Positions 24,603 through 31,642 of a stretch of 64,000 nt of DNA are shown here, piece by piece. The notes under the pieces are model-generated. The model saw nothing but the letters and a program-made list of their open reading frames with translations, did no database searches and was not told the DNA's origin. Every line of letters begins with the position of its first letter. Positions within the stretch are counted from its first letter, which is position 1. Both the position numbers and the translations under genes were made by a program. Source of the DNA: Trichosphaerium sp. ATCC 40318 (lineage: Eukaryota; Protista; Tubulinea); assembly GCA_038496445.1 (NCBI GenBank), contig JALMLS010000537.1, positions 1 through 64,000 on the forward strand, written 5' to 3'.

Positions 24603-27600
24603 TTACATGTATACTATCACTACAGGAGCTTGTTCTTTTGGTTTGTTGAAGAACTGCATGCTAAAATCTTCTGTTTGTTGTGGAGTTCCATAGTATCGAT
24701 AAACACGAACGAATACTGCTACAGGCTCACGCAGTGGTTGAGTATGGAATAGTTTGAGTTGTACATCATAAGGCCCTGTAGGCGCGTTTCTGATCGTATA
24801 TTCTTGAGGACCATAACCTGTACAAAGGTTACACAACAACGATCTATTAAGTTTTTTTTCTTGTACCTTGCCGATCGTCTGACATAAGTCCGCCTGATCG
24901 TGTGTGGTTGTTAAAACTATAACATCTTTCACCTGAAGGCTCAATAACATGTAACTCTACATTGGCTAATGGATTATTCCACGTGATAACAACTCTTAAG
25001 TAACAATAAGTTAGTTTGATGTTTAATGTTTAAGAGTGTTCTTTTTATGAACATACCTCAAGTCGTATTGAAATGTTCTATTGCATATCGTATATAAAGA
25101 AGAGCTTATAGATTTCAGAAGATTTTCAGCCCTTATAATGCCCTCATGGTCATTACATGATGTCCTGAGTGAATGCATAATTCTGCACAAATCCTTTAAC
25201 GCAAATATCTCAATGTTGCCCTTAAAACGATCATCCCAGGTTGTTGTTAGCACTTTCCCAAGTAATTCTATACTCTCTAATATATCCTTGTCTTCGAAAG
25301 CAAGTGCAGCCTCCCTATAACATAGTAAGAAACCAAAAAAGAATATGGGAAAATAAGAAAAATATAGGAAAAAAAAAACCCTATAACGCTTCACGTACCA
25401 CAAGAGCTGAGGTTGCTCTCCACGAATTTTGATCATCTTTTTTAGTACTTGGCGTATCAAATCTTTAGATGCCGTTGCGTCTATGGTATACAGATACCAA
25501 ACAAAAAGACGATAATACTCAATGTTATCAATATCGTCTTCAATCTTTTTTGATATTAATAGTTTACCCAAACGTTTGTTGTTCTGTCCATAGTAAAATG
25601 CGTGATTGATGATTCTTTCTAAAGACACACCGTCTGCTTCAAACTCACTAATGTGGCATGGACTGTCTAATTTTCTTGTACGTTGAGATGATACTATGCC
25701 TTTCTTCTGCCTAAATTTAATAGAGTAAGAACTCGTTCAAATGCGACCTTGTTATCTTTGTTTTACCTTGAACCAACGCTAACTTGTCTCATCAATTCAT
25801 CTAATATAGAATAATCACATTCCTTGTCTTTTGATACATCATAATCCATGCTGTCCTCATCACTACTTGAAGAAGAAGAACTGCTTTCAGATAATAATTC
25901 GGAATCATCTGATTCATCTTCAGAGCTAGAATGCAGAACATATGATGTGTCTTTATCGTCATCTTCACGCTAAATAACATTAATAAAAGTGTTTACAACG
26001 TTTTAAACAAAAATTATACATAAGCACTCCTCCGTGAACGTCTAATTTCTCGAAGTGCAACAGAACCTGCAGTTGATAAGGAACTCCAATAATACAAAAG
26101 AATTTAATATGTACCAGGTCTAAATCTATGTGGTTTCCGTATTCCAGACTCCGATGTTGTAGTATTCGCGTCATCGCTTAAGATAATTTCACGTTCTGAC
26201 TGAGTGTTTTGTGGCTTGTATGCAGGTGCCTTAGATGTAGTCCATCCAGAAGTTTCTCTTCTAGATGATGGAATTGTCTTCACAGGTCCTTTGATTCCTT
26301 TACCCGCTCTGGGCGTCCACTGTAAATCTTCTTCATCACTTTCGCTTTCACTTTCATCACTTGAATCACTCAATATACGGCGGTGTCTCTTAGCAGGCTG
26401 TTTACCACCCAAACCTTTACCGCCTAAACCTTTTCCGCCTAATCCCTTACCGCCTAAACCTTTACCACCCAAACCTTTACCGCCTAATCCTTTACCGCCT
26501 AATCCTTTACCACCTAATCCTTTTCCTTTTTTTTCTTAGAACATTTTATAGTGTATCCAAATAAAGGTACCTCCAAGGCCACTGAAAGATCCATATTGGC
26601 CGATTTGTTTTTTTCTAGCTTTAGCAGGTTGAATTTCCTCTTCTTTCTGCTCTACAATCACTTTTAATCTGTCTAATGAGTCCAAATTTTTATCCCTTGC
26701 TCGTCGTTTTGCTTTTTTCCCTTTTACATTTTTAAGACGCTCTCTAGCTTCTGTTAACATTTCAGCCTCTTCATCGTCATCATCCATTGCATCCTAAAAA
26801 ATAATTAGAAAAAAACAGCTAGCTGATGAAGCTGTGAGAGTAGGGTCACAAGAAAGTATACTTTGAGGTACAGCTAAGATTTTGGATTTTTAATACCTCA
26901 GACTGTTGCATGTGGTCATTTACCGAGCTTGCTTGGTTTTTGGCGTTCTGAAAAAAAGCTCCTTTGTGGTAGTACTTCTGCAAAAACTTGACGCTACTTT
27001 TTTCTGATAGTTTTCTGACTTGTGCTCTTTCTTCTTGCAAACTTTGGTTCGTTAGGGCTGCTCTCTAAGCGTATTATGATAAGCTTGTTGAATAATAACA
27101 TAGTATTCATAGTAAGTACTTACTGTCATACTCCCTTCTGGATTTTTTACAACTACACAAAGAGCTCAGAATGAATGCACATGAATTTAAAAAAAAAACT
27201 TAAGAGTTTGATTTTTGTTTCTTGTAAGACTGTTTTTAGTCTGACCTCTGGTGGTATATAGTATTCATCGCAAAATGTATTGTTCTTGTTGCTTTGCAAA
27301 TTCAACGTACTTTTAAGTTTCCTTGTATTCTTATGTTGCTCTAGCTCATTGGAATCATCACTAACGCTTGGTGATGAGATTATAGAATCACTATCGTAAC
27401 CGCCCATCACACAAACATCCATAAAGTCGTCATCCGGCAACTCAAGCTTTGATGCTTCCTCTACTAGCTTTTCCATTTTTTCCAGATCATCAGGCATTAT
27501 ACTTATCTCTGGAGGCATTAGTGTACAGTCTGTTATGTCAATATCAATTGGTTCTTTCATATCTGATGAGAGTATTGGTGCAGGCTCATTCACAACACAT

Positions 27601-30600
27601 GTTGAATTATAACTTGTTATACTTTTTGTGCCTTCGCTTACAGCGTGTTTTGCAAGTTCTCCTGGAAGCACTATCCTTGTTGCGTCTTGTATATGTCTAG
27701 CTGATATAACAGATTTGTTGTGGTAGTTTGAAACATTTCTGGCTTCATTTGTGATGCGATTGAAAAGGTCATTAACAAAACCGTTCATCAAGTTTATCGC
27801 TTTGTTTGAAATTTCGCTGCCTGGATGAACTTGATGGAGTACTTTGTATATGCGCTTAGTAAAATCTATATCGCTGGTATTTTGGCCATTCGAAAAGGTA
27901 GTGATAGACATGTCATCAGTATCTGTAGGTTCTGGAAGAAGAAACTGTTCAGAATTTTTTGGAAATGTTGATTTGTTTCGTTTTCTACTTGGATATGTCT
28001 CTTGCGTTCTCTTACGTTTGTAGGATCTTGTATTACTTTGATATTGATTCTGATACATGTAATAAGTGTCGTTATAAGTGTCTTCGAAATCAGCAAACTG
28101 CAAAACCTACAAACTTGTAAGACTTCAAGTTTAGCGACTTATTGTTACAAGCAACTTTCTACTTACTTGTCTATTCTTTGATAAAGAGGACGTCTCATAG
28201 AACTTTAAGTGCATATTATATATATCTTGTATTGATAACCATCTTAAAGCTTTAATTGTCTCTGGAGTATCAGTTCTTTTAGACACAACTTCATAATACG
28301 AGGCTCTAAAAATACCAAGCAGTCAGATATGTAACGGCAATGTTGTCACGTACCTCATTTCAGGCATACTCTCAGGAGGAGGTATGCTGTACTTTAAATA
28401 ACTATCAAGGGATTCAAGAACAATCATTGACGTGTATGGTGTAACAAGAGAGTATCGTTTACCAACATCTTTTATACTTGTCTAAAAAACCGAATCAATC
28501 TAACTGGCACTACAAACAAATGCTACCTGAACATCATCGCCATCTCCTCGCATCTTCAGCTCGTCAATCTTCATCTTTGCCCACGTCTTAGAAAGAAGAT
28601 CACCATTATTACTTTCAACAGCGTCTGATAATCGTATCGTGGTTGTATGCATAATATTTCCTGGAGACCCATAATGAAGAATTATGTTTGAGTCCTTCTT
28701 AACAGAATTCATGTCAATCTTCGCAGCTATGTTGAACTGGCTTGCTGCTAATGGCGTTGCAGTTGAAGGAAGCACTATAAATGTTTAGATTAGATTTTAA
28801 CACGTCATAGAATGCTTTTACAAGTCACGTGCGTTCAGATATAAAGTTATCATCGCATTGAGCATACAAGAACGAAAGTGCTTGTACGGAACCAGTCATA
28901 TCTTTTATAATGTTCTCAATAATGCCAGACTTTTTTCGAATAAATTCAAAATCATGTCGTTTGTCTTTGTCACCTTCTTTTGGCATATCATAGAACTTTC
29001 CTCCACTCTTCTTTGCCCACATTTTTAATAGAGTTGTGTTTCTCTTTATTGAGTTGTTGAATACATAAACAGGCCTGGTGAATCGAGGCGGCAGGTGAAA
29101 ATCATCACCAAGTGTATTCAGCCCGTCAGTAACAAGTATAAATACACTGTATGGTGTATCCACATTAGACAATATAGGATCCAAACACGCTAGATTTGTA
29201 GCACCAATACGATGAAAAGAACCTCGGACGGACTAACAACGTAATTATGCAAACGTCAACAAAAAAAAAAAATTTCTTATTTTTTTCTGGAATATTACTC
29301 CAAGTGTTGGCGCAAAAATGTTGCACTGGTAATGGTAGGTACAAAGAGAAAAAGGAAGAAATATTGTAGCGTACATCAACGAGACTTGCGTGGTATTTGT
29401 AAGTCCGCTTTTCAGCGTCTATATCAAACGTATACAAGTCTAGACTACCTTCATAACCATAATTTGCTAAAACTCCTTCAATGATACCAGTGAACTGTTC
29501 AGTGACTGTAGCGCTTCCTGATACATCCCATAATACGCATACTTTACCTCTTTTCTTCTCTTTGTTCGTTCTATATTGCATAGAAGGTATAATATCTTGA
29601 TAGAATAAATGACATTGACTTGACTTCCTGGATCCACTGTTGATCACTGTGTTGCAACTTTTGTCAGGTTTTGTTTGTACGTATTTACTAGCAGTTACTT
29701 ACTTGATATTTGGCATACAGGAGAAGCACAAGAAAATAATCGAACTGTAATTGAAGAAATCGCATTGCTTTTTTGTTTTGAATAATCACAAACATAAGCA
29801 TCTCCTGTGTTTTGAAATTGAAGTAATCCTCCACCAGATACAGACATTTCAGGAGGTTTAAATATTGCACCGAATACCTTTGTTTTTATAAATACGTCGC
29901 TGGAATTCCCAGAGCGTAATGGTAAATGAAACTCAGCTTGGTTGTAATCTTTATTTTCTATTGCAAAAAAAAAAGGTCAGCAAAACGGGAGCTACAAGAA
30001 ATGAACAAAATGGCTTCCACGTGCCTTTTATAAATCTTAGGATTTGCCCTATGGTTACTCGTATCTTCCTTTGTGTACCACGCTTAAAATTATTCATACT
30101 TGTTTTAAACACGTTGCCAACAACATTTTGAACAATCGAGGCTTGTTTTTTTTGAAAGGATTGAGTTTCTTGCTCGAAAACTTTTCTGGCTTTCTCTTTA
30201 TCAACTACAACTGCTTCTACCATGACGTTGTTTATTTCTATGGCGTATTTGGAAACGAAAGCATCTATACAAAGAAGATTAAGCGCGAGAGTTCGTAGGG
30301 CGTTAAAACAATCTTTTAACGCATGGGAGCATCGTTGCAAAGAGTTTTAAGTCACGATTACGCGTTTTGGAGCATGTAAACTTTAAACCGTCTGTTACGC
30401 ACCTTCACCCAACGGAAACTCAAATTCAGCCTCTGTTACGTCATATTCTTCGTTATTCTCAAATATTATCTCCAGTTTGGTTTCTTAGGACAATTTGAAT
30501 ATTAATTTTGTACAAGCTAAGGCTCACCTGCAAGCGCATCATGTATGTCAATCTGTACATTAAATGAAACAGCAGGGATTGACTTTCTCGTTGCTTTATC

Positions 30601-30624
30601 TATGAGTGCTATTGACGCATCCAT
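24603..30624 (-). CDS. VIT - vWA - [histone/spliceosome mosaic insert] - TPR-like - DUF2135 protein (multi-exon)
   Basis: VIT: VQIDIHDALAETKLEIIFEN…EAEFEFPL…AFVSKYAIEINNVMVEAVVVDKEKARKVFEQE. vWA with MIDAS: VLWDVSGS, GATN, LVTDG. ITI-like C-terminus: WAKMKIDEL…GKRYSLVTPYTSMIVLE. TPR-like: RGEQPQLL…WDDRFKGNIEIFAL. DUF2135: LRVVITWNNPLANVELHVIEPSGERCY…GYGPQEYTIRNAPTGPYDV. Confidence 0.85.
26365..26526 (-). repeat. 15-bp coding tandem repeat (GGKGL)x7, histone H4 tail-like, ending GGKQPAKRHRRILSD
   Basis: GKGL(GGKGL)7GGKQPAKRHRRILSD versus H4 [21 protein letters not shown]. The repeat units differ only at synonymous positions. Confidence 0.9.
27603..27863 (-). other. Histone H2B-fold module embedded in the VIT gene
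   Basis: IYKVLHQVHPGSEISNKAINLMNGFVNDLFNRITNEA…IQDATRIVLPGELAKHAVSEGTK is about 55% identical to canonical H2B by hand alignment to the remembered sequence. It is in frame with the upstream VIT-gene exon (…KNRQ|VLQFAD). Confidence 0.9.
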
Positions 30625-30673: not shown

Positions 30674-31642
30674 ATGAATGAACGTCAGAACAGCCTTGAC
30701 TTAACGCAACTACTTAAGTCTTCAGTGTCTTGTCGTTTGACAAATATTGACAACGTGATTAGTGCCGTCACTATGGGTAAGACTAATACCAAACTTCAAA
30801 TATCCACTACACAAGTTCAAAACTCACCTTCAGTGATAGCAAATCATTCAAGTAAGGCTAGTTCGAAACTAGCCGAGAATCAAACTTGTCTACTACAAGA
30901 GCTTCCACCAGAGACATTAACAGAAATTCTAAGCTACTCGTCCAAAAGAGAGCGTACTAGACAGTCTACAGTCTCTCACCTATTCAATAACATCATTCGC
31001 CACAATATCGGTTTGGGTCACCTTTACCTGAATAAACGTGGTCGCAATACAAACTTTGAACCAATCAAAGGAAGTCCTTTACTGAAGAACACTAAGATTT
31101 ACTGTAGTGGTTTAAATCTATCTGGAGATGAGTTATCTTGTCTATATGGTGTTCATACTATAGATTTACAATCTGCAACAATAACAGATGGAGGTGTCAT
31201 TGCGTTAGTTCAAGGAGGAAAACATAAAATTCATACTATTAATTTACAAGAAACAGATATTACAGATTTTTCTTTAAGGGCACTGAAGGGAGTACATACA
31301 ATCAATGTCAAGTTTTGCTACTATATTACAGAAGAAGGATTAGAGGCTTTGAGAGACACATATGAAATTTCAATCAGTCATCCTAAAGATAAGTGGCTTA
31401 AACATCTTGCCGATGTACATAGTGTTCATATTTATGATGGTCTTAAAATTACAGATCATGGAATCAAATTATTGGTAAATGTTAAGCGTTTACACCTATC
31501 TGAATGCAACACAATAACCGCCTCAGGATTGAAGGAATTGGTGAATCTAGAATATCTTTACATTGAGCGATGTGATTTAATAACGAAGTCCTGTTTGGAA
31601 GATATGAAATTTCTCAAATGGGTTAAAGTCAAAGGGAGATAG
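30674..31642 (+). CDS. Intronless F-box-like + LRR protein (intact member of the GVHTINL family)
   Basis: 322-aa ORF with LLQELPPETLTEILSY followed by GVHTIDL/IHTINL/GVHTINV repeats. The start may be the ATG at 30773. Confidence 0.8.
   Translation: MNERQNSLDLTQLLKSSVSCRLTNIDNVISAVTMGKTNTKLQISTTQVQNSPSVIANHSSKASSKLAENQTCLLQELPPETLTEILSYSSKRERTRQSTVSHLFNNIIRHNIGLGHLYLNKRGRNTNFEPIKGSPLLKNTKIYCSGLNLSGDELSCLYGVHTIDLQSATITDGGVIALVQGGKHKIHTINLQETDITDFSLRALKGVHTINVKFCYYITEEGLEALRDTYEISISHPKDKWLKHLADVHSVHIYDGLKITDHGIKLLVNVKRLHLSECNTITASGLKELVNLEYLYIERCDLITKSCLEDMKFLKWVKVKGR

Follow-up and report, generated by a model that had tools for sequence, protein, structure and literature searches.

A Scaffold Gene Carrying a Block of Nuclear Protein Segments

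We analyzed a window of 64,000 nucleotides from Trichosphaerium sp. ATCC 40318 (contig JALMLS010000537.1, positions 1 to 64,000), in which a gene on the minus strand runs from an ATG at 30624 to a stop codon at 24603. The predicted gene has 20 exons and 19 GT-AG introns (36–158 nt) whose phases are consistent, and its exons join into a single open frame of 1481 codons. Its two ends form a backbone made of a VIT domain, a von Willebrand factor A (vWA) region, a tetratricopeptide repeat (TPR)-like region, and a DUF2135 domain. Between the vWA half and the TPR-DUF2135 half lie six exons that do not belong to this backbone (1656 nt, or 552 codons; about residues 560–1110 of the model protein), bounded by two phase-0 borders. 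Read in order, they encode an H2B fold, residues 464–492 of DHX8/Prp22, the core of MFAP1, residues 140–201 of CDC5L, an amplified H4 tail, and residues 11–57 of H3, all in the same orientation and frame and each retaining the most conserved motifs of its source. The block is thus a mosaic of short segments of the cell's own nuclear proteins, highly conserved in their sources and diverged here, and at least six unrelated proteins of this kind are represented in the gene by homologous, in-frame copies. Under the simplest history, a single phase-0 intron of the backbone gene would have received the block, at a point upstream of the exon that encodes an acidic, serine-rich linker.

The backbone is recognizable on both sides of the block. 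The N-terminal part (28167–30624, nine exons; here and below, parts of the gene are on the minus strand) encodes the VIT domain (PF08487, E = 1.3e-8, 35.4 bits against a cutoff of 26.5, exon 30098–30346), a putative vWA domain, and a post-vWA region. The vWA domain is split over exons and gives just one domain match, VWA_CoxE on one exon (E = 0.071); in the gene model its DxSxS motif (DVSGS, the metal ion-dependent adhesion site, or MIDAS) is intact and is followed by the later T and by LVTDG. The C-terminal part (24603–25710) encodes the TPR-like region, then DUF2135/YfaP_C (PF09906, E = 2.4e-5, 24.8 bits against a cutoff of 22) and the stop codon. The few relatives found that align with the TPR-DUF2135 end are P0121 (62% identity in exon 24868–24993), P0124, and P0123; P0124 is the sole relative of P0121 and sits on a bacterial-looking contig. 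Atlas neighbors of the backbone are bacterial VIT/TPR/DUF2135 clusters of proteins of ~970–1015 residues, so the Trichosphaerium protein, in which the backbone accounts for ~900 of 1481 residues, carries an extra ~500–700.

Other searches with the backbone returned little. An NCBIfam search gave nothing, as did a metagenome scan with the DUF2135 exon, and three weak matches were all that an exhaustive HMMER search returned for the TPR exon, the best of them an MMETSP transcript (32% identical). The window's own protein is absent from the collections searched by HMMER, which indicates that this genome is not represented there. Within the 64-kb window, tblastn of all exons found no second copy of any exon. 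The predicted 84-nt intron at 25315–25398, in the TPR region, contains no in-frame stop, and its retention would add 28 residues and leave the protein unbroken.

Segments of Three Spliceosomal Proteins

A preliminary description of this DNA had proposed fragments of Prp22, MFAP1, and CDC5L at 26665–27152. All three are real and lie there on the minus strand, and HMMER searches make the MFAP1 and CDC5L matches significant; the proposed extent was too short at its lower bound, however, as the CDC5L-like exon continues past 26665 to 26571.

The MFAP1-like piece lies in exon 26924–27064, which encodes RAALTNQSLQEERAQVRKLSEKSSVKFLQKYYHKGAFFQNAKNQASS. It matches Pfam PF06991 with E = 2.9e-10 (40.8 bits against a curated cutoff of 26.8) and residues 328–354 of human MFAP1 in the PDB (5o9z_K, E = 0.003). 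Its core, EKSSVKFLQKYYHKGAFFQNAK (26939–27004; human residues 331–352; MFAP1 core KFLQKYYHRGAFF), is 22 residues long and alone carries 35.5 of the 40.8 PF06991 bits. The match is restricted to positions 135–178 of the 215 in the MFAP1/Spp381 profile, with the core at 147–170, and is thus a fragment. In the human B complex, the C-terminal region of MFAP1 and UBL5 form the 5′ exon channel, in which MFAP1 K340 contacts the backbone of the exon and Y335 is stacked against one of the 5′ exon bases (PMC10943123). The copy keeps K340 and the KFLQKYYH-GAFF core.

The CDC5L-like exon (26571–26793) begins DAMDDDDEEAEMLTEARERLKNVKGKKAKRRARDKNLDSLDRL, and its first 62 codons (26608–26793) copy CDC5L residues 140–201 (DAMDDDDEEAEMLTEARERLKNVKGKKAKRRARDKNLD...), with 28 of 62 positions identical to the human segment. 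In phmmer searches against the PDB this piece matched CDC5L/Cdc5/Cef1 of six species (E = 1.1e-7 to 4.7e-5). Only residues 140–201 were copied, a segment that we take to lie just after the Myb repeats, and no exon of the gene has a Myb match. The predicted intron between the CDC5L-like and H4-tail exons (26535–26570) measures 36 nt, as compared with 44–62 nt for the RNA-confirmed introns of the gene.

The DHX8/Prp22-like piece is divided between two exons. Its first half, (I)VKNPEGSMT, is encoded by a 29-nt micro-exon (27124–27152), and its second half, RAALTNQSLQEERAQVRKL (27008–27064), opens the exon that it shares with the MFAP1 core and runs into the weak upstream margin of the MFAP1 match. 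The two halves are separated by a 59-nt, phase-0 GT-AG intron (27065–27123), present as the preliminary description had it, which splits the piece without any gap in the alignment. A search of the PDB with the joined peptide, up to E = 10, returned three DHX8 sequences only, all at residues 464–492 (E = 0.08). The ungapped alignment has a BLOSUM62 score of 70 (12/29 identical), which none of 5000 shuffles of the DHX8 segment reached anywhere in the protein (maximum 41). In a six-frame translation of the window, the first ten residues of the piece, encoded by the micro-exon, score 41, against 24 at the next best place; the 19 residues of the following exon score 29, and chance matches elsewhere in the window reach 32. 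The match is therefore significant solely as a whole, its second half being weak alone, and as a whole it is sound: The assignment to Prp22 rests on the micro-exon signal and on exact ungapped continuity across the 59-nt intron. Residues 464–492 are the only part of DHX8 copied, with no Pfam match to the S1 domain or the helicase core; we take the segment to lie between these two domains, in a portion that yeast Prp22 requires to bind the spliceosome.

The micro-exon is predicted to be included in frame. The donor A|GTACGT at 27311, whose GTACGT hexamer also serves two other introns of this gene, supplies the phase-1 donor that the micro-exon needs, and its A joins the TT of the micro-exon in an Ile codon across the junction, giving IVKNPEGSMT. 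Were the alternative donor GAG|GTCAGA at 27246 used instead, it would connect in frame with 27064, leaving the micro-exon out.

These comparisons agree with the earlier proposals that short segments rather than whole domains were copied and that fragments had been captured, since the pieces are true homologous copies of three different spliceosomal proteins. They also uphold the argument that plain exon shuffling is insufficient, as DHX8-like and MFAP1-like parts occupy one exon. Between them lies QEERAQVRK, which fits DHX8 (KERRELK) and, weakly, the MFAP1 profile, adding ~5 bits to the MFAP1 score; because it is compatible with both, the junction falls within a few residues common to the two sources. 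PDB searches found no further credible hidden fragments in the N- or C-terminal flanks of the H2B exon or in the acidic exon, and these failures elsewhere in the insert serve as an internal control for the fragment matches.

Could the arrangement be an artifact, either a misjoined assembly or a set of chance similarities? Neither DNA nor RNA read evidence spans 25240–28240, as such an error would allow. Nonetheless, the similarities have strong statistical backing, every junction is consistent in frame and splice phase, and the block resembles the rest of the gene in composition and codon usage; we regard an artifact as highly improbable.

Histone-Derived Segments and Other Features of the Insert

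The block also contains histone sequence on both sides of the spliceosomal pieces. Its first exon (27311–28106) encodes a complete H2B histone fold (Pfam Histone, E = 1.4e-9), 52–64% identical to canonical H2B and flanked by unique sequence; searches with this exon for relatives returned plain H2B proteins only, with no homology in the flanks. The H4-tail exon (26115–26534) encodes eight GKGLG units followed by GKQPAKRHRRILSD, so that the array reads GKGLG ×8 plus AKRHRRILSD, and then a copy of the H3 tail from about residue 11 to 44. A small exon (26020–26066, SVALREIRRSRRSAY), which includes SVALREIRR, continues the H3 copy through residues 45–57. The preliminary description had envisaged selection for splicing-factor epitopes, a view that does not accommodate the H2B, H4-tail, and H3-tail copies of the same block: The collection is not specific to the spliceosome.

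Several modifiable histone residues are replaced in these copies while their surroundings are kept (26020–26400 and 27630–27680). The replacements are H4 K20 to R, H2B K120 to S, and, in the H3 copy, K36 to R, Y41 to F, T45 to S, and K56 to R; H4 K16 and H3 K14 are unchanged. The replacements may form a pseudo-substrate pattern or reflect no more than conservative drift.

One possibility raised by the histone pieces is a docking or regulatory scaffold, in which the H2B fold would pair with H2A and the tails and helices would tether the protein body to chromatin and spliceosomes, or act as a dominant negative. Such a scaffold would be the nearest form of the antagonist proposed earlier for this locus, recast as an endogenous regulator. 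The completeness of the H2B fold and its level of identity to canonical H2B speak for it, as do basic clusters in the model that resemble nuclear localization signals (KRKR...RKRNK and KGKKAKRRAR) and the selection apparent on the H4-tail array (below). On the other hand, each spliceosomal piece is merely a fraction of its native interface, as MFAP1 exemplifies, and we consider docking a rather unlikely function.

The remaining parts of the insert are introns and a linker. A putative intron of 158 nt (27153–27310; donor GTACGT, acceptor TAG) leads from the H2B exon to the micro-exon, and a phase-0 GT-AG intron of 130 nt (26794–26923) lies between the MFAP1-like and CDC5L-like exons. Downstream of the block, the acidic, serine-rich linker exon (25767–25969), which is present in relatives too, restores the phase for the TPR exon. 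By eye, hydrophobic cores followed by Ser/Asp/Glu runs at 26340–26400, 26170–26200, and 25900–25950 (RILSDSSDESESE, EIILSDD, and YVLHSSSEDESDD) resemble SUMO-interaction motifs.

Expression, Coding Signal, and Selection

Available RNA data comprise contigs from three small runs of one sample. These show GT-AG joints at 30484–30527 in the N-terminal backbone and at 24995–25056 and 24818–24866 in the C-terminal backbone, so both gene ends are transcribed and spliced. The contigs are identical to the DNA except at position 24774, where RNA has T and DNA has C (coding-strand G to A); the change falls in the third position of a Gly codon, is synonymous, and is probably an allele or strain difference, not editing.

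Within the insert, the evidence for coding comes from open frames, codon usage, and substitution patterns. Open frames of 317, 143, and 85 codons would arise by chance with P = 3e-11, 2e-5, and 1.5e-3, in DNA where a random codon is a stop ~7% of the time. When codon usage was scored with the backbone and neighboring genes as the training set, each large insert exon did best in its annotated frame, and intron scores were around zero or negative. The CDC5L-like exon scores +23, against −24 and −33 in its other frames, and the 47-codon DHX8/MFAP1 exon is weakly positive (+2.6). In the H4-tail array, five nucleotide columns vary among the units, all five at third codon positions and all differences synonymous, a placement with a chance of 1 in 3003. 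The host-like codon usage, together with the restriction of H4-array variation to synonymous changes, indicates that the insert is probably translated under selection.

This pattern bears on the idea of neutral accretion, under which the linker simply tolerates insertions: Filler DNA or pieces of cDNA would have landed in one intron and turned into exons (perhaps optional ones) that serve no specific function, or would stay outside the main mRNA. Several features are as that idea would have them: The block is removable in frame and is not covered by RNA contigs, its pieces have diverged to 41–48% identity with the human segments, and the flanking linker is of low complexity in relatives too (P0123). 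It fits poorly, however, with long open frames that are improbable in AT-rich DNA, with host-like codon usage in the right frame, with variation among the eight H4-tail units that is synonymous only, and with six pieces that share orientation and frame and retain the most conserved motifs of their sources. We judge neutral accretion improbable, though deserving some weight.

Genomic Surroundings

The gene lies among ordinary cellular genes (F-box/LRR, MORN, RWD, and 5-formyltetrahydrofolate cyclo-ligase), and base composition is uniform across the window. The F-box/LRR gene (30674–31642, plus strand) is arranged head to head with the scaffold gene, its start 49 bp from the scaffold ATG, and a promoter common to both is possible. 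The F-box/LRR protein carries no histone-like tail.

Pack-type transposons and Helitrons typically capture gene fragments, and another reading would assign the gene to a virus, a transposon, or a different selfish element, one that gathers host fragments as a means of attacking the spliceosome. Around 25766–28106, where the 15-nt H4-tail array is the sole repeat, a search for element termini found no meaningful repeats, inverted or direct, and there are no element genes around the block. Moreover, backbone exons on both sides are spliced in RNA, the flanking genes and uniform composition are those of a cellular locus, and the block holds histone pieces besides the spliceosomal ones. We therefore attach very little probability to a selfish element. 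The preliminary description had pointed to an antagonist that targets the spliceosome, and this part of it finds no support at the locus. Based on its host codon preferences, its ordinary neighbors, and the lack of viral or transposon marks, the gene is a resident, intron-rich cellular gene of the VIT-vWA-TPR-DUF2135 scaffold type.

A Candidate Display of Mimic Peptides

What might the insert do in a resident protein? We tentatively favor, while holding it to be far from assured, a reading in which the insert that carries the three spliceosomal pieces acts as a set of displayed mimic or bait peptides. Under this reading, the pieces would have survived because some binding partner still takes them for the originals. 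Strung along the protein as mimic peptides, they would make up a bait or decoy region and would compete for or capture factors that normally recognize histone tails and these spliceosome segments, be the factors endogenous or brought in by an invader. Output would then come from the VIT-vWA and TPR-DUF2135 ends.

Several observations weigh against a bait or decoy role. RNA contigs cover nothing in 25240–28240, and inclusion of the insert exons in mRNA is a prediction; the whole block could be skipped in frame. The 36-nt intron, if retained, would stop the frame at 26536–26538, and the protein would end after the CDC5L piece. Just upstream of the block, an RNA contig at 28272–28920 is unspliced across three predicted introns. 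At its 28272 end this contig carries the template-switch oligonucleotide TATCAACGCAGAGTACGGGG, on the plus strand, and it may represent an antisense transcript, pre-mRNA, or genomic carry-over. As to binding, the MFAP1 copy has Val at the Y335 position and lacks the remainder of the C-terminal region. Each piece is a small part of a larger interface, so that binding to the original partners is not assured. Finally, database searches yielded no orthologue by which conservation could be judged.

A more specific version of the display hypothesis would make the gene one member of an expanded scaffold family in which each member displays different conserved host targets, here histones and the spliceosome. 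In an amoeba-like protist this would amount to surveillance by integrated decoys outside the nucleotide-binding leucine-rich repeat (NLR) receptors, aimed at pathogen effectors or toxins directed against those targets. The Pfam searches found no match to NB-ARC or NACHT STAND NTPases in any exon of the gene. We consider this version possible but doubtful.

Comparison with Known Systems

The closest architectural counterparts are bacterial VIT-vWA-TPR-DUF2135 (YfaP_C) proteins, with which the Trichosphaerium protein shares its VIT and DUF2135 Pfam matches; the MIDAS motif DVSGS is visible in its putative vWA region. It differs from them in being encoded by an intron-rich eukaryotic gene, in its length (1481 vs. 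~1000 residues), and in its 552-codon host-derived block. A role for the insert in display, if true, would give this scaffold family its first functional handle. DUF2135 is the C-terminal domain of YfaP, whose gene in Escherichia coli is part of the yfaS operon. The notion of an exposed, variable stretch as a lure for an attacking enzyme also recalls the bait region of alpha-2-macroglobulin-type traps; here there is no thioester or macroglobulin domain, and the link consists of the operon association only.

Histone-like sequence in nonhistone proteins has precedents in the ARSK tail of influenza NS1 and in the ARKT self-mimic of G9a. As in these examples, the histone-like tails of the insert could engage readers or writers. 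The insert differs in carrying long homologous copies (H4 1–25, H3 11–57, and a whole H2B fold), together with spliceosomal copies, in place of short convergent motifs. No report in the literature searched describes a single cellular protein in which six or more short copies, each homologous to a different and deeply conserved nuclear protein, follow one another in frame and under apparent selection, and we found nothing relevant on DUF2135, on integrated decoys in Amoebozoa, or on VIT-vWA conflict systems. We know of no other case of such a six-piece nuclear-mimic chain in one cellular protein.

Pack-MULE and Helitron capture, as well as template-switch retrocopies, make chimeric genes from unrelated host fragments. 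The insert resembles these chimeras in setting fragments of several host genes side by side, with the DHX8/MFAP1 junction falling inside an exon at a shared EER. Unlike them, it has no terminal repeats or element genes, and its pieces lie in frame and in one orientation, under apparent selection, within a resident gene. This internal junction, together with the intron-split DHX8 and H3 copies, makes the locus a clean case for fragment capture and exonization in an intron-rich protist.

The integrated decoys of plant NLRs, such as the WRKY domain of RRS1 and the HMA domains of RGA5 and Pik-1, are copies of a host target built into a receptor as bait. Here too, copies of host targets lie inside a larger receptor-like protein. 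The Trichosphaerium protein, which comes from a protist, lacks NB-ARC and NACHT domains and carries many peptide-sized pieces in place of one folded domain. If its pieces do act as mimics, they would extend decoy or bait proteins beyond the plant NLR paradigm, to proteins built on a bacterial-type scaffold.

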